DNA of 63,290 nt, filler included, from Ministeria vibrans ATCC 50519 (GCA_943704425.1; 5 parts of 5 records of this genome joined end to end with filler, not necessarily neighbours in it), one strand, 5' to 3'. Shown: positions 5,137 to 23,500, counted from the first letter of the whole stretch. The notes: a model not told the origin generated them from the letters alone. Numbers and translations are program-made.

Positions 5137-6863
5137 TCATTCAAGTTTACGCGGAGCAATAGGGTCTGAAGTGTAGAGGACATCGCCATTGTCGCTGTGG
5201 TAGACAATGGTCATGTTGTCCTTGTTGACGCGGAAGGACGCAAAGCCTCCGAGGACTCCCGCCGGGCGGTTGCTGCCGTCCATCGAGTATTTGAGCGAGC
5301 CCGCCGGAATCTTGTCCTTGTTCTTGTCGCTGTAGCAGCACTCGTGCCTACAAAACATAGATTCAGTGTTAGGGCACAAAATGAGCTGTGACTGAGTCGT
5401 ACGCGGCGCCTGAGAGAGAGTAAATGACGCCCGAGCCATCATCAATGTGCTCGAGACAGTGGTCGTGGCCGCACATGTAGTGCGCGTGGTACTTCTCAAG
5501 AAGCGGGCGCAGGCGTGACTTGAGCTCAAAGTTGGGTCCATGCTGGCATACGGACCAGACGGGGTAATGGCCACCCACCCACACGTACGTCGCATTAGCG
5601 GCGGACACAAGCTCACTCTCAATCCACGACCACTGCGACTCTGCAACCTGCGACCACGCACGCACACATACATGAAAAAAAGAGTGTGTGAGAGAGCGGG
5701 AAAGCAAGAGTGAGTGAGTGAGTGAGTGAGTGAGTGAGTGAGTGAGTGAGTGAGTGAGTGAGTGAGTGAGTGAGTGAGTGAGTGAGTGAGTGAGTGACTG
5801 AGTGACTGAGTGAGCGACTGGGTGACTGAGTGACTGAATGAGTGAGTGAGTGAGTGAGAGCGGGCAAGCGAGAGTGAGTGAGTGAGAGCGGGCAAGCGAG
5901 AGTGAGTGAGTGAGAGCGGGCAAGCGAGAGTGAGTGAGTGAGAGCGGGCAAGCGAGAGTGAGTGAGTAAAAATGAGTGAGCAAGTAAGTCGGGAAAACGA
6001 CGACATGTTGAAAAGAGAGCAGCAATTGAAAATACCTCTGTGTCATATTCGTCAAAGACACCAAATTCAAGGTCTGACTCAAGGCCTGTCAGTTTGACTG
6101 TGTCCACCAGAATCAGCTTGAACGTGAGATTGGCGCCAAACGTGAATGTTTGAGAGTAGTAGTAGTCTGGAAAGCTACGCAAGGTGAGTGAGTGAAGGTC
6201 GAAACCAGTACAGGGATGGAATGGCTTAGGCGTACTTCCAGCGCTTTGAAATGTTTGTGTACGCAATTTCAGCCTCAACGCCATTGTCAGCGTTGGCGTA
6301 ATCGTGGTTGCCCGCAATGAAGTAAAAGGGAATCTGGAGCGAAGGGGCCGTGAAGACGCTCTCAAAGCTGCAAAGGGAGAGCGAAGAGAGTTCAAAGGAG
6401 GTTCAAAGTGTGAAAGTGCAATGGAAAACAACGCAACGACCAGTCGCTCTCTTCGTGCATACGTCTCGTTAAAGCGCGGGTCTGTTGCGTGGTGGTGAAT
6501 GCCGCTGTTGTAAAAGTTGTCGCCCAGACCGACTAGGCAGTTGTGTGGGCAGGCGAGAGGGATGAGGAAGGGACGAGAGGGTTAGCACTGTGTGTCGGGA
6601 GACAAGCGCACCCAGAGCAGTCCTACCGACAAACTCAGCCTCAAGTTCAGCAGCAATCTTGCCCATTCCCTTGGCACATCCCACTTCAGCGGGCGTAGTG
6701 AATGGCTGCAGCAAAGAAAGACAGATCAAAAAGAAATCCAATTGAACTCCAGACGTACAGAAGAGTCCGCACCGCCCCAATCTCCCATAGTCAGGAAGTT
6801 GAGAGTTTCGCCAGCGAAGGCAGAGCCAACGGCGAGAGCCAGAATGAGACAATGGATTTTCAT
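5137..6863 (-). CDS. ACP5: Secreted tartrate-resistant (purple) acid phosphatase, ACP5-like
   Basis: Signal peptide MKIHCLILALAVGSAFA; metallophosphoesterase motifs GDWG, GDNFY, GNHD, GGHYP, CGHDH; C-terminal GGFASF; multi-exon GT-AG. Confidence 0.92.
5708..5968. repeat. (TGAG)n microsatellite with interspersed GAGCGGGCAAGCGA units (ACP5 intron)
   Basis: Directly visible tandem array. Confidence 0.95.
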
Positions 6864-7133: not shown

Positions 7134-7330
7134 TCACATGTCTTGACGGAGTCGCGCAAGACGATCAGTCAGTTCGTCTTGCTCCGAGGCCGATGCCGAT
7201 GCGGTACCCACTGGAATCTAAACAACAATCGGAAAATGGATGAGTCACACCCAAAAAGCTCTTCTCTTCACACAAACCTTCGTCTGGTCCAGCTCCACTC
7301 CAAGTTCCAGGCCATGTTCATCGGCAACCT

Positions 7331-7404
<74 letters not shown>

Positions 7405-8011
7405 NNNNNNNNNNNNNNNNNNNNNNNNNNNNNNNNNNNNNNNNNNNNNNNNNNNNNNNNNNNNNNNNNNNNNNNNNNNNNNNNNNNNNNNNNNNNNNNN
7501 NNNNNNNNNNNNNNNNNNNNNNNNNNNNNNNNNNNNNAAAAAAAAAAAAAAAAAAAAAAAAAGACATGTCAGATTCAGCGTAGAGCCGAGTTCGAGTCCA
7601 ACGTTCGGTCGTACCTCTTGCATGAGCAGGTCGACCTTGTCCTCGGGCACAGTCAGTGTCGTCGTTGCCGACATCGACGACTCCATGTACTGCGTCTGCA
7701 CATCCAGATTCTCAAACTGCTTCTCAAACTTGTCCATCGTCAGCGAGATCTGTCATAATATCAATGAATGTTAGGCCAAAACTTGTTCCCTTGTTTGTTG
7801 CACCTGTTCCAAATTCATCGCGCTTGCAGCCTGGTCCATCGCCTTGACTACACCTGCCATGTCCTTGGTGACCTTTTTCATACGCACGGCAGTCTCAACA
7901 CGGGCAGCAACAGCGTCAACGCGCGATGCCATCCGCAAGAAGTTCAGAGACTGAAACAGAAGAACATTATTTGAGGGTTGCAAGAGATACGAAGCATCCT
8001 CGTCACAACAC

Positions 8012-12353: not shown

Positions 12354-15300
12354 ATGGAAGCTCAGACGACTGCCGAGGATACGTGGGCTCTGATCGAAAG
12401 CGGCATTGGGGAGGTACGCACTAAACCCATTTGACGGTCGAACTATCGCTTTCCATCGGGTGTCTCACGCCACGCCCTGCTCCCTCCGCGTAGGTGTTTG
12501 GCTTTGACGACACCCGCTCCTCCGAGGTGCTCTCCACTGAGAAGTACATGGAGTACTATACGTAAGACGAGGAAAAAAAAAACGGGACGAAACATCAAAA
12601 AAAAGGAGACAGAGAAAGACGCTTCGCACGCCTGTACCGCGGTTGCCACGCCCCCGCCGTCAGCGCAAGGCGCAACCCAAGTGCTGCACCTTGCTGTGTT
12701 TCACGCGCAGACGGCCGTGGACCGATGTCTTGCGCTGTCTTGGCAAAGCGACACGGCACTCTGGTCGACACACCATCCTTCTCCCTTTCCTCTCATGCGC
12801 TCCTCGTCCTTCCCCCCGCCTCCCCCCCGCCTCACCATCTCCTCTTCCCCCTTCTTTTTTGCTTTTCTCATTGTTTGCTGCTCAACCCGGTCGCGCTTGT
12901 GGAGCGCGTCAAAAACGCAGAAATGTGTCTTCTTCTTCTCCTTTTCTCCTCCCCTGCACCTCTTCGGACCTCCCATTGCCGTATCCTCCCACCTGATGTC
13001 CCCCCAGCCTTTGTCCCGTGTGTTTGTGTGTGTCGTGCACCGTCGCATTCCGACGTGTCCGCCATACCTCGTAAAAACACTTCCTTCTGACAACTCGCCT
13101 CTTTCGATCCTTTTCAATCTTTTTTCGCTGCTCCCTTTTGCGTGACCCCCGACCATGTCACCATCCTTCCACGCCATATATCCTCTCAGGCATCGATGTT
13201 TTGACGGCACAATTTACCCTGTCACAAATGTGCTTTTGCTCTAAACCTGCAAACCCTGTAGCGCTGTCCACAATTACTGTATGGGTTCGAACACGAACCA
13301 AACCCAGGTGGTAGTTGGGCCTCGAGCTCACACGTCGGGTGCCAAATACATTGGTCGTGATGTGTACGAGCGCCTTTCGCGCTTCATCGAGACCTACCTC
13401 ACCGACATCTCTCAGGCAAGTTTCTCCCACAACTGCAACTGCGTCGAAGCAAACACTAATAAATTTATTGTTTTGTTTTCATTCCTTCTCCCTCCCCTCT
13501 CTCTATTTCTCTTTACAGAGTGAACTGACCGGTCACACGGGCCTGGCCTTACTCGAACGCGTCAAATACCAATGGAGTCGATTTACATTTTCAGGACGTG
13601 TTGTTAACAATATATGTGGCTACCTCAACCGTCACTGGATCAGTCGCGAGCTTCAGGAGGGTCACGATAACGTCCACAAGATTTACGCGGTATTACATTA
13701 AACCGTTCCGTGCGGGGGGGGGTTTTTTTTTTGTTTTTGTACATCCCGGCTCACATTTTATTACCCTATCCACACTCCCTCTTCCTCTGTGTAGATGGAG
13801 CTGATCAAGTGGAAAGAGATTGTTTTTGTGGACCTGAGCATGCAGTGTGCATCGGCGTTGCTTGAAGAAATAGAGAAGGACCGCAACGGAGAGAGTACGA
13901 CATTGTTACTCTTTCGTGCGTCAGTCATATTAATAACATGCTCTCCTGATTCTGCACAGGTACTGATAGCAACCTACTTCGGTTGGTTATTGAGACATTC
14001 CTTGCATTGGGTTCGCCCGATTCGGCTTTGAACGACCCCGCGCATGTTGGTGACGAAGACGAGATGAACGCCTACTACCGCGTAAACCAGACACACGCTA
14101 ATCATTGTGTTTCTCACGATTCACACTTCCTTTGTCGATAGGAACACTTTGAGGGCCGTTTCATTGACATGACGCGCAGCTACTATTATCGAGAGAGTGA
14201 ACAGTTTCTTGAAGAGAACCCTGTCACAGAGTATGTGAAAAAGGTACCATTTTTGTTTTTGTTTTTTTTTTTTTTTTTTTTTTTTTTGGGGGGGGTGTTC
14301 TGTATGTTCTGTATGGTCGTCTTTCTTCTATGATGCTTTTTTTCAACCCCGCATGTTAGGTCAACCAGCGAATTGAGGAGGAGGAGAAGCGCTTGCAACT
14401 GTACATTCCCAAGACCACAAGTGTGAAGCTGATGTCGACGCTGGACGACGTCCTAATCACAGCGCACCTGCACCGCTTTCAAGGCGAGCTCAAAAAGCTG
14501 CTCGACCACGACCGCACCGACGATCTCCGTTTTTTGTACAATCTGCTAGTGCGTCTGCCCAACGGTGTTGATGCACTCCGTGATGCCTTTGAAGAGCACG
14601 TCAAGGCGTGCGGTCTGCGCGACATTGCCGAAGTGGCCAACACGGCGTTCACCGACCCGAAATTGTACGTCGAAAAGATCCTGCACGTCTACAATAAGTA
14701 CGACGACTTTGTGAGCAACGCCTTCCGCAACTCGCACCTGTTCAAGCAGGCCCTTGACAAGGCCTGCCGTGCCTTTATCAACGCCAACGCTGTCACTGAG
14801 AAGGCAGGCTCGAGCAGCAACAAGGGCCCCGAACTCATCGCTCGCTATTGCGATCAGCTTCTCAAAAAGACTGCGCGCGCCGTCGAAACTGAGCTTGAAA
14901 CGGTTCTCTTCCAAATCATGATTGTCTTCAACTACATCGATGACAAGGATGTCTTCCAAAAATTCTACTCTAAACTCCTCTCAAAGCGGTAAAATTCGAA
15001 CGAAAAGAAAAGAAAAAAATTATGAAGTGTATTCATTCCCAACGTTGCATTTTTAGTCTGATTGCTGGTGTGTCTGCGTCCGAAGATGCCGAAGAGTTAA
15101 TGATTAGCAAACTCAAACAGGTATCACCCCACCAAAAAAATTATCATTTTTATCTTTCTTATTATTATTTTCTTAGGCGTGTGGTATTGACTATACAGCA
15201 AAGCTGCACCGCATGTTCAACGACATGGGACTGTCGCGTGACATCAACAGCGAATTTCACTCCAAGATGGACGGTCGCATCAACATCGACTTTAGCATTC

Positions 15301-15789
15301 TCGTCCTTACCACGAGCGCCTGGCCACCCACCAAGGCCCAGTTTAAGTCGTACCTCGTGCCCGAGGAGCTCTCCTTTGCTATTGCCAAGGTAGTCTTTGT
15401 GTATGCCCTTGTGTATTCTCAACAACTTCACGTGTGTAGTTTACCGAGTACTACCAAGTCAAGTTCAACGGTCGTGTTCTCTCCTGGGTGTACCACATGT
15501 CCAAAGGCGAGCTCAAGACGGGCTTTACCAAGCCGCAGACGTACACTCTCCAGGTGTCCACCTACCAGATTGCCATTCTCCTTCTCTTCAACCGCCAGGA
15601 TACCATACACTCCAAGGAAATCTCCCAGGATACCGGCATTCCCGAGCCGCATCTCAAGGTTCACTTGTTCATTTTATTTGCGCGTCTGTCTCATCGTCCC
15701 CTGTAGAACATCATGGAAATCCTCGTCAAGTCGTCTCTCCTCAAGGACGCCGGTGACGGCAACTACTCAATCAACCGTTCCTACAAGAG
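12354..15789 (+). CDS. CUL1: Cullin-1; 3' end lost in gap
   Basis: YMEYYTAVHNYC, YLNRHWI, KGPELIARYCDQLLKK, FNYIDDKDVFQKFYSKLLSKRL, MISKLKQACG, GRVLSWVYHMSKGEL. One GC-AG intron at ~13416. Confidence 0.95.
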
Positions 15790-16000
15790 GTTTGTCATAC
15801 TACCAGCTACAATCAGGAGTAAACTGTTCGATTTGTATACTCTAACATTGTCGTTTTTGTTTTTTTTTTTTNNNNNNNNNNNNNNNNNNNNNNNNNNNNN
15901 NNNNNNNNNNNNNNNNNNNNNNNNNNNNNNNNNNNNNNNNNNNNNNNNNNNNNNNNNNNNNNNNNNNNNNNNNNNNNNNNNNNNNNNNNNNNNNNNNNNN

Positions 16001-16107
<107 letters not shown>

Positions 16108-16226
16108 TAACAAAAATGGGTTGTATTCTTCTTCTTCTAATAATAATAGTGAGAATAATAATATGTAAGAAAATACACAAAATTCAATGACAAGTTCAAA
16201 ACTTTACTGCGTCTCTTTGCACGTAC

Positions 16227-16670
16227 CTTTCCTACATACTCGATTGGAACCCACACTTCGTACGAACCGCACGGATGAGGGCCGGTCGGCACATGGTTGA
16301 TTGGCGGGATGCTGCTGGTGTTGAGGCCGGGCAGCATGTCGTCGCTGACGCCGTCGAGGACCGCCACAAGCTCATGGCGGCGCACCATGTCCAGCAGCTC
16401 GTCGCGGATGCGCATTGCCGCCACATACGAATCGTTTTCGTCGGGGATTTCCAGCCCTGGAAGATGCCAGTACACATGGAAGTGCCACTCCTTGATGGCG
16501 GGGTCGGGCCAGGCCACGTCGGCCGCAAAGTCGATGGGGTTCACTTGCGCGTGTGTCGTCACGAAGCGCGAACCCCCATGGATCGGATCCATCTGTGAAG
16601 GGGGCGGTAGAACTTCTTGTCCAAAGCCAAGCGCACAGTGGGTAGCTATAACGAGTACCAAAGGGAGCAT
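16227..16670 (-). CDS. Secreted DOPA 4,5-dioxygenase-family protein; first exon, remainder in gap
   Basis: Signal peptide MLPLVLVIATHCALG; IKEWHFHVYW and INHVPTGPHPCGSYEVWVP motifs typical of the DOPA_dioxygen family; exon ends VGK|gtacgt. Confidence 0.8.
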
Positions 16671-16752
16671 GAAAAAAATAGGAGAAGTGAGCCAAGATCA
16701 CAATTCACAAGATGGGAGTGAACTTAAACACTTTCACTTTCACTTTCTTGCG

Positions 16753-19142
16753 ATGCGCATCTTCGTCTTTGCCGCCGTGCTCGTCGGGTGTGTGTCGCTG
16801 GGGTCGGCTGGCGACTGTGGCCTGTTTGGGCAGGCGTGCTGCAACAATGGAAAGGCGCTCGTGTGCAGCAAGCACCAAGGCGCCTGTCTTGTCTTCGACG
16901 GCAACATTGACGGCGTCTGCTCCGCCTTTGGCGGCGTCTTTGTCAAGAACTCCACTGCATGTGTGCAGCCAAATTACTTTGCTGACCCTCAGGTGAGACG
17001 GCTCCTCTGCCACGCAGCCAGACAATACCCCAACATCAATACTAAAAAACGAACGGGTTTTGCTTGGAGGTCCGCACTCACCTCACCTGCGACTGTGCAC
17101 CCGGGTTCGCCACTGTGTGTGCTCCTACTGACGATGGGCTGTCGCTGTGCACGTGCACCTCGACCAACCTCGTCTCAGACTCGCTCTACGGCGGCATGTA
17201 CGCCCTCGACGCCCTCACGCACCAGTGCGCCACCGTCAACCCGATTACCCTCCAGTGCGCCTGTCCGTCGTGGACCACCCCTGCCAAGCCCATTCCAACG
17301 CAACATTCAACTATTGTCATCTGCTCCGCCGATAAATTCGCCATGCCCGCTCCCTCTTACGGCGGTAGGGTGTGCATGCAGCAACCCCAAAGACACCCCC
17401 TTAACGTTCTGCTTTCTTTTTTATATATACTTCTTAGGATTTTGGACATCATCAAACACATCGGCCTGTCTCTCGCCCAACCCACTGACAGGCACGTGTG
17501 GCTGTCCGGCAGATCCGACAGACTCAGGCTTGACCTTCTGTCCCTTTTCGTACCCGTTGGCTCATTCGTCGGCGAGCGACACACTGACTGTGTGCCACAC
17601 ACGACAGGCGTACGGTGGTCTGGAAGTGCTGATGAGCGCACCAGGCGTTGAAAGCATTGTTGTGGGGGAGGTGCGTGCGGTGGTGGGTGTGCCTGCCGTG
17701 CAGCACTTTGACCTGGGCGGTTTCCACGGTGTCTACGACCACATTCACTTTGACGTGGATGACGTGCACCTTGCGTCACTCTCCCTTGGCGACGACGTCT
17801 CCTTCACCTTTGCCGACGACGAGTTTACCTTTGAGATTGACGGCGGATCCACTCTGGTCAAGGCGGACCATGTCGAGGGCTCCTTCATCGGTCTTAAGGC
17901 ATACTGTGACGCGGACATCACTGTCACAAAGGTACAGTGCGATACTCTCGTGATACGACACTCTCTCTTGCTTACTTCCTTATTTACCCATTCGCCCATC
18001 TACCCGATTAGGTGAAGGTTGTGCTTGCGGTGAACGCGTCGCTGCTGACGCCCGGGGGTCGTCTGTATCCTGTTGTGTCGTTGCGTCAGTTGGTCTTTGA
18101 ATTGGGGCACATCAAAGTGCGCATTTCGGGAGGGAATCTGCCCGACGACAAGATTGACATTGTGATTGCATTTCTTGAGTGGCTGCTGCCCAATCTGTTT
18201 CGCGCCAACCTCGCGCCTGTCCTTGCGCCCATCATCCAGCAGCAGCTACAGAAGCTGACAGGACTGGCGGCACTTCAGCTGTCGCCTTTCTTCAACTTCA
18301 CGCTGGGCCCGTACGCCTTTGCCTTTGACGCCTCCCTTGTTGGCTGCGAGATTGCCATTGCCAGTGCAGGTCTAGCCGCGCGTGTCCAGGGCGTACCGTA
18401 TCTGCTGGCTCCGCCTGCCCCCGCCTACGAGTACCGCCCGGCCCCGGCTTCGCGCGTGCCCCTGCCCCACCGCATCCCCGGCATGGCGGGTGCCGTCCTC
18501 TCCCCGGCCCTCCTCGAGGCCCTTGCACTCACCCTCTTTCAAGTGGGCGCCGGCAATTTCAACATCAGCCAGTACACCACAAAGGATAACCGCACCGTTG
18601 GTCTCATGGTCCGCGATCTTGCCCTCTTCATCCCCGAGGCCGCGCGCATGTATCCCGCCGCCCCCATGTTGCTCGCCATCCAGACGAGCCCTTCCGCTCC
18701 GTACGCCATTGCCCCTGTGTTTGACATTGACGCCACTGGTACGCTCTAATCTCTTGCAATTATATGGACTAACTCACAGAATGGCGCAGGCATCAACCTC
18801 AACATGACCATTGGGCTGTCTCTGTACGCACTGACCAACGACACGTCGCACGGCAACGCCAGTCAGTGCGTCTCGTCCACTCCCGCTCCCAATCAGCCCC
18901 TGTCCAAGTTTACTTGCAACATGCTCCTCTTCTCTCTTGCCGTCTACACTACCATTGAGCCTGTCTTTGCCAACGACACTACATCGTAACAAATCACGAA
19001 ATCACGACGACTTCTTTCTATTTGCTTATGTGACTGATACACCTATCTCTCTCTCTATCACTTTGTCTCTCTCTTTCACTTTGTTTCTTTTTCGCTTTAT
19101 TTGTTCTTTTTCCCTCTCTCTCTTCTCTCTCTCTCTATCACT

Positions 19143-19182
<40 letters not shown>

Positions 19183-19599
19183 CTCTTTGTTCTCCTTCCT
19201 TTTTGTCTCTCTCTCTTTCTGTCTCTCTCTCTCTTTCTGTCTCTCTCTCAGATGGACTGCGACCATCCATTTTGACCTGGCTGAGTTGGAATTGGCCCTC
19301 GAGCAGTCCCTTGTGGGTCCTGTCGACGAGCGCATTGTCGCAGGGCTCAACATGCTCATCAATGGATTTCTTGAGATCATTTCGGCCAATCTCAATCGTG
19401 CACTCGATCGCATTGCCCTCCACATTCCAAAAGACACCACATGTAACGTCCCTTTTCACACTCACTGACTTGCGCCCCTATCTACACACTAACTTTTCGA
19501 TCCTTTTTTGTAGTCCTCACGATTACCAATATGCAGTCTGAGACAGGCAATGAGTATGTGTCCGTCGCGCTGGACTACATCTTCCACCCGCAGTTGTAG
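16753..19599 (+). CDS. Secreted Cys-rich (FGG..NP.TG.C.CP repeats) + BPI/LBP-like lipid-binding protein, paralogue A
   Basis: Signal peptide MRIFVFAAVLVGCVSLGSA; repeats FGGVF..PNYF, YGGMY..VNPITLQCACP, YGGFW..PNPLTGTCGCP; then GLEVLMSAPGVESI, FIPEAARMYP, SLVGPV as in BPI/LBP/CETP; about 7 exons ending IFHPQL*. Confidence 0.75.
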
Positions 19600-19631
19600 C
19601 TTCTTTCTTTCCATCACTTTGTTTCCCTTTC

Positions 19632-19683
<52 letters not shown>

Positions 19684-19778
19684 CTCTTTGTTCTCCTTCC
19701 TTTTTGTCTCTCTCTCTTTCTGTCTCTCTCTCTCTTTCTGTCTCTCTCTCAGATGGACTGCGACCATCCATTTTGACC
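19149..19778 (+). repeat. ~130-bp direct duplication (19149-19276 and ~19640-19778) of a CT-rich intron end plus exon start
   Basis: ctacctctttgttctccttcctttttgtctc...ctctcagatggactgcgaccatccattttgacc occurs twice. Confidence 0.9.
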
Positions 19779-19798
19779 AATATTAAAGAAAATAACTA

Positions 19799-22191
19799 TT
19801 AAACTACTACATCGAGATTGAGGAGAATGGTAAAGAAGTGTTGGGCAGGCACAAATGGCACTGGCGGAAGGGAAAAGCTCAGATGGAAAGCAGTGGGCTG
19901 GGCAATTTGCAAAGGATGCGCCGCAGAAAGCGTGTTGATGGCAGGCGCAAAAAGAAGCAGAATGCCATCAAAGAACCGGTCAAATCCAGCGAGAGGGCCC
20001 ACATTCGTACTCTGTTGTGCGTGTGTGGGTGAGACAAACTCTCTTTCTATCTCTCTCTACTCTTTCTACTGTCTTATCTTACGATAGTCTTGCCAGTCAC
20101 ATCGGCAAACAGAAGGTTGATGGAGAAGCTCACGTGCTTGTCATCAGCCGAGACAATCGGGAAGACGTCAGCATGGAAGACGAGGGTGCTGGTAAAAAGG
20201 GTGCACGAGCAACGTTGAGCAGTCGCGTCGTACACGCATGTGGGGTCGGTGCGGCACGACGGCGCGTGTGTGAGCGCAACCATGGTGACCACAAAAGCAA
20301 AAGAGACGGTCACGCCAACCGGGCTGGTTGTAAATTCGGGCGCGTGTGTCATGGTGAGCTCAGGCGTGCACTGGAAGAGTACATCGACGGTCGCATTGGG
20401 AAACTTTTGAGGAATCTCATTACTGATGCCGGCCACAAGCAGACTGTGCGTTGAGAGGGAACAGTTGACGCCAAGCAGATGGCACAGTGTCGTGAGGTGT
20501 CCGTTGATATGGTCGTCGGCGTAGAGCACGTCGAAGAGTGAGTTGATCATGCTATCACTGATGGTCACGCCAAAGTCCTCAATGGCGGGCTCACGCGGAA
20601 GCGGCGCATACGGATAGATGGGCTCACGCAGACCTCCACCCGTCGCAGAGTGGTTGGCAAAGAAGAGTGCTCGCAAGGGCAGAATCACGCCGGAGTGTTC
20701 AAGCGGAATCTGTTCGCCGGCCGCAGAAAGATCCAACTCTAAGTCGCCCACAAGTGCAAGGTGCATCGGAGGTGCATCAAGCACACCTGACGCACCAATG
20801 GCCGCCACTGCATCTACAAGCACGTCCGAAAGCAGAGTCGACAGCACCTTGCCATTGCACAGATCTTCCAAGGCCTTCGAGACGGCCTCCTCGACGGCGA
20901 CCGTCAGCACCGGCTTGTCCCACAGCGACGCGTTAAAGTGCGTCTTGACATGCCCCACTTGCACCACAATGCCCCCCACGTCGCCGGTCCCAATCTGTAG
21001 ATCCACCCGCCCACCTACCACAGGCGCATCCAGCGTCACCCGCGCCGCCAGCGAGAAGTCGCTCAGCGTAATGGTGACCGTACGGCTCACATCGCCCAGA
21101 ATAGACTTAACAGACACAGCTGCACTCGCACTAAGAGAAGCACCACGCATCCCGACCGTCCATACGTTTCCCTCTGAAACAACCTCAATCTTGCCGGCCT
21201 GCGCAATGGCCGGTCGCAGCTCTGACAGCGAAAACGTGACCTGGAAGAAACAGAACAGAAAAAATAAAATGGTATATACGAGGGTGGATGGGTTAGAGTA
21301 TAGCGTCCTGTTGTTATTGTCCTCTCGCTTTGAGTTTATCGGTACTTTGAACCCAAAGACGTCGACGGTGTCGCTGATGGTGGGGAAAGTGGTGTTTTGC
21401 AGGAGAACGCCGAGCACGCTGAAGAGCCCCTGACCAATGGCCTCCATGCCGTTCTGGTTGATGGACACGCCGAGGTAGGCGGCTTCAGGCGACACCAGAC
21501 AGAGAGTGACGTCGCGGTTGCCGGTGCGAAACGAACGGCGCGAAACTTTCATGTCGGTTGCAGTGAGGTTGAGCGAGGGACAGTCGCATGTGCTGTTGGC
21601 CACGAGCGGGTTCCCGCTTGAGCATGACGACACTCCCGGGTTGCGGCTGAACCCGCCGGCGTACACGGCAAGCGCGTCGGTTGGGAAGTGTGCGCCGACG
21701 GGCAGGAGAGGGACGCAAAAGACGACAAAGGTCGCGTTGCCGTGGCTGTCGAGCAGGCCCGGCAGGTAGGTCGACGGGCCGTAGCCCTCGGGGCAGCTGC
21801 AGCCGCCAGTGTAGTCATTGGGCGAGCATGCCTCGCCGGCAGCCGTGCTTTGGTACACTCCGCCAAAGGCAGCGCCGGCGGCAAAGTGAGCGGCGGCGCA
21901 CACGCAGAAGCGCTGCTTGTCGACGAGCGAGAAGCAGCGCTCCTGGTAGCCCCGCGTGCACTCGCAGCGCGGATGCTTCCACGTGGGGCTGGAGTAGTAG
22001 TTGGGCAGGGAGCAGGCGCCGGCGCCGTCAAAGATGTAGAAGCCGCCAAAGGACGAACAGACGCCGTTGACGTTGCTGTCGAACACCAGACAGGTGGGAC
22101 ACGCCGCATCGCATTCCTGTCGTCCAGGTCCTCCGGAGCGCGCCAGGGCGGGGTACGCCAGCACGACGAGCGTCAACAGGATGAGTTGCAT
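19799..22191 (-). CDS. Secreted Cys-rich + BPI/LBP-like lipid-binding protein, paralogue B
   Basis: Signal peptide; CLVFDSNVNGVCSSFGGFY (paralogue A: CLVFDGNIDGVCSAFGGVF); FGGVYQ..NDYTGGCSCPEGY; LGVSINQNGMEAI, ISDSMINSLF, IPQKFPN, STNVG (BPI-like). Last exon 20011-19799. Confidence 0.8.
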
Positions 22192-22322
22192 CGAAGACGA
22201 GAAAATAAATACTACACTTGAATTAAAAACATTGTCTTGTGACCTTATCTATTGATATTTGATTCTGCTCCAAAAGAAAAACTTATTTCGCACCCTGACT
22301 CCTGGGTTGCCCACCTGCTGCA

Positions 22323-23500
22323 ATGAAGCTACAGCTGTTGATTGCGTTTGTTGCGGCGGCGGCGGCGGCGGCAGTGGCGGCAATGACGGCGCCACTGGTG
22401 GTCAGCATTGATGTTGACCAGGAGACGGTCAGCTTTGTCCACAACGACCAACTGATCGAGCTGCTGGCGTCGGAGCGGCTCAGCGTCCTTGCCCATGTCT
22501 TTGGAGAGCGCTTTTCTCTCATTGACCCGCGAGGGATGTCGCATATTAGCGTCAACTCGACGCTGGCAGCCGCATTGCGGACGGGACGCATTCTCGCTGT
22601 GGGTGGCGCCCAACTGGAGCTTGTGATCAAGAACCCCGCCGTCACAAGCCGTCCTGTGGTAGCTCCGGCCGATGCATGCTCTTGCGCCACCGGTCGTGCC
22701 ACTATCTCGTCGACGGCAAGCGTAGTCTCGGCGACTCTCGCCCTGCAGGACATTTCGGGCGAGACATGGAGCATTGTTGCGTCAAACGGCACGATGAACA
22801 CCGCACGGGTTGGCACGGGTGTGCGCAGCTCACTTGGTGCGGATGGTACACTCTGGGTGAATGGCAGCGTTGTTTCGACAGAATCAGTGACGGGCGCACA
22901 ACTCAATGTTGCCGGTGACGGCACCGTCCAAGGAAAACTGACCATTGGTGGAGGTCTGACGACCACGGGCGATGTGTCGCTGACTGGTGGCAATCTCAAT
23001 GCGCAGACCGTGTCGGTGGGCGACGCAACAGTGTCACACGACCTCATTGTGACGGGCAAGACGACAGTGGGTGCCGTAGACATCCAGTCAGGCAGTGCAA
23101 CGACACTCACCGCACACACACTCGCAGCAACCACCGCAACGACCGACACACTCGCAGCAACCACCTCAGTCACAGCGCCCTCGGTCTGTGCCGGTACTCG
23201 CTGCCTCGACACACTCTCCTTTGCATCATCGACCTACCAAGTGGATGGTGGCACTGCCAAAGTGCACAATCTGGGTCCTCATCTCTTCTGCGCTCTCTCG
23301 GCCGTCCACCCACACGGCTGGACGAGCTTTGACATTGTACACAAAGATAGAAGGAGGGAGGGTGGGCGATGGAGAGAAGACTCACGCTCGAATTTTTGAA
23401 TTGTCTCTTGTAGGAACTGACCATTGTCAATGGCAATTGGACTGTCACCACCTCTGCTCCTCAGAGTGACTCGGCAATTATGTGTTTTGACTTCAAATAG
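22323..23500 (+). CDS. Secreted fibre/adhesin-like protein with beta-repeat stalk and Cys-containing tip domain
   Basis: Signal peptide; V/T/G-rich short repeats (LNVAGDGTVQGKLTIGGGLTTTGDVSL); VCAGTRCLD; HNLGPHLFCALSAV; intron 23337-23413 gives ELTIVNGNWTV..AIMCFDFK*. Confidence 0.75.

Follow-up and report, generated by a model that had tools for sequence, protein, structure and literature searches.

The stretch of Ministeria vibrans ATCC 50519 DNA analysed here (GCA_943704425.1; 63,290 nucleotides including filler, hereafter the window, contig C220) carries four intron-containing genes between positions 16227 and 23500, arranged as two head-to-head pairs according to the open reading frame (ORF) listing and the raw sequence. 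We refer to them as G1, encoding a DOPA-dioxygenase-family protein, G2 and G3, encoding P2-BPI proteins, and G4, encoding a Thr/Ala/Val/Ser/Gly-rich protein. An earlier note, made from the DNA sequence alone, had described this group as a candidate module for the recognition and killing of bacteria. Based on gene structures, RNA contigs, profile and structure searches, and genome-wide scans covering the 29.7-Mb assembly in 2860 contigs, we consider it rather probable that these are instead four separate, transcribed genes of the secretory pathway that do not form a four-gene module, and that G2 and G3 combine a P2-type prism, of the kind found in perforin-2/MPEG1, with a body of the BPI type.

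Gene layout and transcription

The start codons are located at 16670 (-) for G1, 16753 (+) for G2, 22191 (-) for G3 and 22323 (+) for G4, and both these positions and strands and the gaps of 82 bp (16671-16752) and 131 bp (22192-22322) between the divergent ATGs agree with the earlier note. G2 and G3 are placed tail to tail, with stop codons approximately 200 bp apart. To examine transcription, RNA contigs of four public runs were aligned to positions 16500-22499; three of the runs (X7, X17 and X18) carry differing organism labels and the fourth (X20) is a poly-A marine metatranscriptome. The spacers and the exons of the two P2-BPI genes are listed below, together with the evidence for each.

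16671-16752: spacer between the divergent ATGs of G1 and G2, 82 bp
16753-16992 (+): G2 exon 1, signal-like peptide, Cys-rich lead-in and first half of P2-like repeat A (joint 16992/17070 in X17, X7 and X18)
17070-17364 (+): G2 exon 2, end of repeat A, repeat B and start of repeat C (profile A5, E-value 5e-27 at 17157-17330)
17438-17931 (+): G2 exon 3, end of repeat C and start of the BPI-like N lobe (match to the relative P0002 at 17428-17910, E-value 3.7e-6)
18012-18738 (+): G2 exon 4, remaining BPI-like N lobe, linker and start of the C lobe (A4 alignment with G3 and P0002)
18790-18985 (+): G2 exon 5, BPI-like C lobe (joint 18738/18790 in four runs including X20)
19252-19442 (+): G2 exon 6, BPI-like C lobe and helix (contig pieces of X17 and X7; joint 19442/19514)
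19514-19599 (+): G2 exon 7, ending with TAG at 19597-19599 and giving a protein of about 742 amino acids in total (RNA joints, frame check)
19799-20011 (-): probable G3 exon 3, 70 codons plus TAA at 19799-19801 (from homology, without RNA contigs)
20083-21240 (-): G3 exon 2, 386 codons, BPI/LBP-like body (weak collinear match to Pfam LBP_BPI_CETP_C, A4, hhalign)
21346-22191 (-): G3 exon 1, 282 codons, signal-like peptide, three P2-like repeats and start of the BPI-like N lobe
22192-22322: spacer between the divergent ATGs of G3 and G4, 131 bp

Five of the G2 introns are delimited by GT..AG spliced joints in the RNA contigs (16992/17070, 17364/17438, 17931/18012, 18738/18790 and 19442/19514), and a sixth, at 18986-19252, is implied by contig pieces of X17 and X7 that cover 18789-18985 and then 19253-19442. 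The resulting G2 exons are in phase and free of internal stops. For G3, the intron at 21241-21345 is removed in X17 and X18 by the spliced joint 21346/21240, and the 5' ends of G1 and G4 are also covered by RNA contigs. As the spliced joints are canonical, the runs represent cDNA and the genes are transcribed and spliced. Public gene calls end G3 at 20074; our model instead continues into a third exon, for which a GTAAGA donor follows 20083 and a CAG acceptor precedes 20011, both in phase 0, and which matches the homologous position L023:2606-2899 on a contig described below (BLASTP E-value 9e-8). With this exon G3 would comprise about 738 amino acids. In the searches reported below, the exons of G2 were used one at a time, G3 entered both searches and folding as the open frame 20077-22191, with its 35-codon intron read through and exon 3 absent, and G4 was analysed without its last 28 residues.

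All four proteins have a signal-peptide-like start, as had been proposed before, with an N-terminal hydrophobic stretch (mean Kyte-Doolittle value 2.6-3.3 over 10 residues) followed by small residues at -3/-1, as judged by a heuristic rather than by SignalP. For G2 and G3 this heuristic is backed by 26 Cys in each protein and by N-glycosylation sequons, of which there are 10 in G2 and 8 in G3; G4 has four such sequons.

Within the same region we also observed a 144-nt direct duplication with 97% identity between its copies (19134-19277 and 19635-19778). The first copy spans the boundary between intron 5 and exon 6 of G2, taking in the CT microsatellite at the end of the intron and 26 nt of the exon, and the second is located just past the G2 stop, between the 3' ends of G2 and G3. 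This could be either a real segmental duplication or an assembly artefact.

A P2-like domain at the N-terminus of G2 and G3

The Cys-rich region of G3 is composed of three repeats, at amino acids 40-99, 100-161 and 162-233 (amino acids 40-233 corresponding to 22074-21493), and these repeats and repeat B of G2 align with four invariant Cys, one Gly and one Asn. The suggestion that this region is P2-like was borne out, as structural alignment, Foldseek and sequence profiles all lead to MPEG1. The AlphaFold model of G3 has a mean predicted local distance difference test score (pLDDT) of 39 overall, and reaches 50-70 in the Cys-rich part alone. When this model was compared with 48,161 PDB chains using VIA-align, the P2 domain of mouse perforin-2 (6sb1_A) was the top match with a Z-score of 9.8 over model residues 46-164 (100 residues aligned, root-mean-square deviation 4.1, 22% identity), followed by another MPEG1 chain at Z 5.7, with the first unrelated chain at Z 4.8. 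With Foldseek, the top 13 matches of the G3 model were all P2/MPEG1, with E-values from 3e-5 and probabilities of 0.69-1.0 (0.98-1.0 for the ten best). Profiles A6 (E-value 7.6e-4) and A7 (0.013) matched MPEG1 chains only when searched against the whole PDB up to an E-value of 10. These matches, which are independent of any structure model, share the motif FGGxY ... NPxTG ... SCPxGY with MPEG1, where it is found in two successive repeats. Against the PDB, the single-repeat profile A5 gave only noise and plain phmmer searches with G3 and P0002 nothing useful.

P2 has pseudo-threefold symmetry with one disulfide per repeat, and uses an extended hairpin in its first repeat to bind phosphatidylserine, cardiolipin, Escherichia coli lipids and lipopolysaccharide (LPS) (PMC6989145). 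It was without recognisable relatives until its structure was solved, and is now seen as a divergent MABP beta-prism (PMC7593815). Like the P2 domain of perforin-2/MPEG1 (PDB 6SB1, 6SB4 and 6U23), G2 and G3 have three tandem Cys-rich repeats in what appears to be a luminal or extracellular context behind a signal peptide, and the common motif is [FY]GGxY ... N-P-x-T-G ... C-x-C-P-x-G. Unlike in MPEG1, the P2-like domain of G2 and G3 is N-terminal and followed by a BPI-like body, and the MACPF domain, the EGF-like linker, the CTT/L-domain, the transmembrane anchor and the cytosolic tail are all missing. Pfam scans accordingly returned no MACPF match for either protein, and a hydrophobic C-terminal segment is also absent. 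To judge from their domain content, G2 and G3 are not MPEG1 orthologues. A further difference is the absence from both of the hyper-extended basic hairpin of repeat 1, which is the lipid binder of MPEG1; the net charge of the P2-like region of G3 is -2.

Scanning the genome with the repeat profile revealed P2 repeats in G2 and G3 alone, plus a fragment on C1696 (19042-19149) that comprises 29-36 residues with 92% identity to the first repeat of G3 and is located beside a CT microsatellite and approximately 2.5 kb of N. This fragment may be a third copy in the gap, an allelic piece or a misplaced read. P2 repeats were not detected in the single MACPF gene of the genome (C1760).

A BPI/LBP-like body

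The larger, C-terminal part of both proteins had been called BPI-like, and at the sequence level its homology to the BPI/LBP family can be regarded as established. When the family profile A4 was searched against the whole PDB, the top three matches were 1BP1 (E-value 1.4e-5), 1EWF (1.7e-5) and mouse LBP, 4M4D (2.6e-5). The match is collinear over about 280 positions and spans BPI residues 93-339 (mid-N lobe to mid-C lobe), including the Y/F-P-N motif of the C lobe. Aligning A4 by hhalign with the canonical BPI-like ORF of the same genome (C313) gave a probability of 92.7% and an E-value of 4e-7, and the relative P0002 is above the Pfam threshold for LBP_BPI_CETP_C (26.3 vs 23 bits). Based on language-model features the best Atlas matches were BPI-family clusters, and in the Foldseek search with the G3 model BPI was the first match other than MPEG1 (1EWF/1BP1, E-values 7e-3 to 9e-3), albeit with low TM-scores and a pLDDT below 50 in the body. 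In our own reading of the alignments, a Cys of G3 appears to align with what we take to be the BPI disulfide residue Cys135.

G2 and G3 resemble BPI and LBP in being secreted-looking and in having a body of about 480 amino acids, but differ from them in the extra N-terminal P2-like domain of about 210 amino acids. They are also very divergent from BPI, remaining below the Pfam thresholds (LBP_BPI_CETP_C 14.3 bits for G3 exon 2), and net negative, in contrast to the cationic N lobe of BPI. As a functional precedent from a unicellular eukaryote, compared here by description only, efficient permeabilisation of phagosomal Klebsiella by Dictyostelium discoideum depends on the BPI-like protein BpiC (PMC10107278). 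No P2-like domain in BpiC is reported in the literature that we found.

Paralogy and distribution of the P2-BPI fusion

G2 and G3 are 41% identical over 57 amino acids of the first repeat and about 20% identical further on, and their bodies are barely alignable pairwise. With about 740 amino acids each, they are anciently diverged paralogues. The same order of three P2-like repeats followed by a BPI-like body was found in two further sources. The first, P0002, is a EukProt transcript of 691 amino acids that is collinear with G3 and with the G2 exons and is the sole full-length protein relative. The second, L023, is a 4.3-kb Logan contig with 67% GC from another organism, and carries a complete G3-like P2-BPI gene that is split into several frames by introns or frameshifts. 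Since identity among the members is only 22-35%, the fusion is old, and it is conserved in at least three organisms.

Beyond these, relatives are exceedingly rare in public data. Exhaustive HMMER searches gave three matches among 1.8 billion representatives, one of them being the 164-amino-acid fragment of G3 itself. When G3, G4 and P0002 were compared with 5.8 billion proteins by a word-indexed search, no relative other than P0002 itself came up, and metagenome scans for relatives of G3 and G4 found none. The 164-amino-acid record (P0001) is a C-terminal fragment of G3 that corresponds to window positions 20074-20568 and ends at the read-through stop, and no matching record for G2, G4 or full-length G3 was present in the searched protein sets. 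This fragmentary public record of G3 explains why homology searches remain blank, and the P2-BPI genes are thus nearly invisible in public protein sets, with G3 present only as this fragment. In neither Pfam annotations nor a literature search over 8.4 million papers did we find a P2-type prism without MACPF fused to a BPI/LBP-like body. The P2(MABP)-BPI combination is a small, conserved and previously undescribed architecture.

The outer genes G1 and G4

The two exons of G1 are located on different contigs:

16227-16670 (-): G1 exon 1, 148 codons, signal-like start, extension of about 40 amino acids and first half of the family domain (HFHVYW motif)
Contig C1592, L015:253-450, outside the window: G1 exon 2, 65 codons plus stop, behind an acceptor site

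The assignment of G1 as a DOPA dioxygenase was upheld by matches to PF08883 over both exons and to PDB 2NYH/2PEB. Exon 1 covers PF08883 positions 1-63 with 20.5 bits, below the family cut-off of 25, and C1592 covers positions 58-105 with 47.6 bits, above it; against the PDB, the exon on C1592 matches 2NYH/2PEB, annotated as 'putative dioxygenase', with an E-value of 2e-5. The TAT microsatellite of C1592 (L015, 1-1021) mirrors an ATA run at 16000-16110 of the window, and its other strand encodes the C-terminal neddylation domain and the stop of a cullin whose earlier exons are located at 14393-15800. With the remainder of PF08883, the shared microsatellite and the cullin end, C1592 fits, reverse-complemented, into the N gap at approximately 15870-16000. 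In addition, a 710-nt RNA contig (X7 record 18) is as long as a spliced two-exon G1 mRNA should be. We infer that the two exons are joined because of the scaffold gap, the shared microsatellite, the cullin end on C1592 and the length of this contig, and as predicted from both exons, G1 is a complete member of the PF08883 family with 213 amino acids and a signal-like start.

Compared with PF08883 proteins of the Amanita DodA type (PDB 2NYH, 2P8I and 2PEB), G1 spans the whole profile, including H-x-H-x-Y and HP-x-T, and differs in having a signal-like peptide and the 40-amino-acid N-terminal extension. A second, unlinked PF08883 gene on C1214 (L014 957-1851) likewise has a signal-like peptide and an N-terminal extension. 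Secretory-pathway forms of this usually small and apparently cytosolic family seem to be the rule in this organism.

At its 5' end, the X7 contig of the G1 transcript departs from the genome at 16673, 3 nt upstream of the ATG, and continues with 30 unmatched letters; the G2 contigs also begin within 3-5 nt of the G2 ATG. A spliced leader is an unlikely source of these letters, as there is no AG acceptor at this point and X7 is labelled as a different organism. The 30 letters probably reflect strain divergence in the 82-bp spacer.

G4 is encoded by two exons:

22323-23336 (+): G4 exon 1, 338 codons, signal-like peptide, alpha/beta N-terminal part, Thr/Ala/Val/Ser/Gly-rich stretch and Cys-containing C-terminal part
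23414-23500 (+): G4 exon 2, 28 codons plus TAG at 23498-23500

The intron between them (23337-23413) was deduced from GT..AG in phase 0, and an RNA contig of X7 covers the gene over 22300-22499. The protein consists of 14% Thr, 12% Ala, 11% Val, 11% Ser and 10% Gly and shows a weak hydrophobic periodicity of 5 and 10 residues, which is compatible with a beta-solenoid or a fibre. The earlier note had taken G4 for a fibre protein with a lectin-like role, related to the shufflon PilV tips. Neither the fibre and PilV assignment nor a lectin relationship found any support in Pfam, PHROGs, NCBIfam, PDB profile or Foldseek searches: matches to Pfam, PHROGs and NCBIfam were noise, profile searches of the PDB gave nothing, and the G4 model (pLDDT 32) had no Foldseek match below an E-value of 0.7. 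PF04917 (shufflon PilV) did not match G4, nor did it give any match in the control genomes, and the Atlas leads to phage fibre clusters, with values of 0.82-0.85, are no better than chance would give. A paralogue on C1507, 67% identical and with the same exon end, is the sole relative detected, and G4 is presumably a lineage-specific protein.

By eye, the neighbours of this paralogue on C1507 include thioredoxin-like, EGF and HYR/LRR proteins, an SH2 tyrosine kinase, an epimerase and a lipase. Among them, the ORF at L007 2941-3978 (-) appears to encode an SH2 domain followed by a tyrosine-kinase domain, which would suggest a holozoan-, apusozoan- or amoebozoan-like lineage for this marine heterotroph.

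Proposed function and alternative explanations

With regard to the function of G2 and G3, we infer that both are soluble proteins of a luminal or extracellular compartment, each consisting of a signal peptide, a three-repeat disulfide-rich beta-prism and a two-lobed tubular body that would bind lipid. The P2-like prism would bring the protein to a membrane or lipid surface, where the BPI-like lobes may take up or transfer lipid. The likeliest site would be the endolysosomal or phagosomal lumen or the cell surface, with ingested or foreign membranes as the target. Several findings weigh against this reading. The BPI fold of the body is without a confident model (pLDDT below 50), and the structural matches to P2 derive from a middling G3 model and partly from sequence. 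Moreover, the basic P2 hairpin is absent, appearing in MPEG1 as a 17-residue insertion relative to the family profile, and G2 and G3 are strongly acidic, with net charges of about -27 and -29. Of this, -20 falls on G3 exon 2 and -17 on G2 exon 3, contrary to what the cationic N lobe of BPI would lead one to expect. Due to the acidic charge and the absent hairpin, BPI-style binding of anionic LPS is doubtful, and neither of the known modes of binding anionic bacterial lipids can simply be transferred to these proteins. Finally, as contig-level RNA cannot measure co-expression, it does not refute co-regulation of the four genes.

The acidic charge and the missing hairpin also make a role with neutral or self lipids a serious rival. 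G2 and G3 would then handle the cell's own lipids, through CETP/PLTP/TULIP-like transfer or lysosomal digestion, or build a surface or coat, and the prism would serve as an endomembrane anchor. In their acidity they are closer to the family's lipid-transfer members than to its bactericidal ones, the canonical MABP domain of ESCRT-I binds endosomal membranes of the cell itself (PMC7593815), the genes are expressed in ordinary culture RNA runs, and the genome retains a separate canonical BPI gene on C313. However, the closest sequence relatives of the two domains are MPEG1, BPI and LBP, and not CETP or the MABP domain of ESCRT, and the signal peptide, the 26 Cys and the 8-10 N-glycosylation sequons suggest a protein that resides in a lumen or outside the cell, so that we regard this explanation as possible but tentative. 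We see it as unlikely that the four genes form the co-regulated cassette proposed earlier, in which bidirectional promoters would drive a lectin-like fibre (G4), LPS-binding proteins (G2 and G3) and an oxidative enzyme (G1) that together capture or kill bacteria. It is true that all four products look secreted, that they are encoded by two divergent pairs with ATGs 82 and 131 bp apart, that P2 and BPI serve animals as membrane-targeting modules against bacteria (PMC6989145), that a BPI-like protein permeabilises bacteria in Dictyostelium phagosomes (PMC10107278), and that contigs of G1 and G2 occur together in X7, X17 and X18. The linkage is, however, not conserved: neither the G4 paralogue on C1507 nor the G1 paralogue on C1214 is linked to a P2-BPI gene, the ORFs neighbouring the G4 paralogue include none that resembles a P2-BPI or DOPA-dioxygenase gene, and the G3 homologue on L023 has a convergent protein kinase at its 3' side, where G3 has G2. 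RNA presence is also discordant for the G3/G4 pair, as X7 has contigs for G1, G2 and G4 and none for G3, and X17 and X18 have G3 contigs and nothing over the first 177 nt of G4; as contigs give no expression levels, this pattern is only a hint against strict co-expression of the two. Furthermore, no relationship of G4 to lectins, fibres or shufflon proteins was detected, and G2 and G3, which are acidic and have no basic hairpin, are paralogues, so that two of the four members go back to an old local duplication. An antibacterial or killing module of four genes is therefore not supported. Short head-to-head spacers would be expected in a genome this compact, and the neighbourhood is best explained as an old G2/G3 duplication in such a genome beside two unrelated secreted-protein genes; the locus does not have the appearance of a four-gene module under selection.

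It is highly improbable that the apparent genes are products of a scaffold rich in repeats and gaps, be they chance ORFs, pseudogenes or assembly artefacts. The scaffold does contain N gaps, microsatellites and the 144-nt duplication, the G3 fragment on C1696 is located beside a 2.5-kb gap, and there are almost no matches in 5.8 billion proteins, but the canonical spliced transcripts in four independent runs refute this explanation. In addition, the frames are open across exons, the same architecture is found in two other organisms, and the G4 paralogue is 67% identical and has the same exon boundary.

MPEG1 has been described as an ancient metazoan effector, and to our knowledge P2 has so far been known only from perforin-2, an animal pore-former in which it serves for docking to the membrane. 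With the P2-BPI architecture of G2 and G3 in mind, one could speculate that P2 is an older mobile targeting module that was, in some unicellular eukaryotes, fused to a lipid extractor of the BPI type, giving rise to pore-independent secreted or phagosomal effectors acting on bacterial envelopes. We consider this scenario doubtful; if true, two pillars of animal innate immunity would be combined in one protein outside animals. The fusion provides a testable handle on the joining of membrane-targeting and lipid-extracting modules before or outside animal immunity, and its hairpin-less P2 domain is suited for asking what the prism itself recognises.

Flanking sequences and minor observations

Housekeeping genes had been proposed on both sides of the four genes. 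The cullin was confirmed, and UBE2J2 could not be confirmed within the piece. No LHC gene was found in the genome, and DNA of the organism appears in marine and algal-culture runs. An alga such as Nannochloropsis, initially suspected because of the genome size and these runs, was dismissed in view of the missing LHC gene and the SH2 tyrosine-kinase-like ORF on C1507. Further upstream in the window, two ORFs were assigned by eye. The one at 5137-6082 (-) resembles a purple/tartrate-resistant acid phosphatase and is broken by a long SLTH-coding microsatellite, and the one at 7318-7737 (-) resembles a CHMP1/Did2-like ESCRT-III protein.

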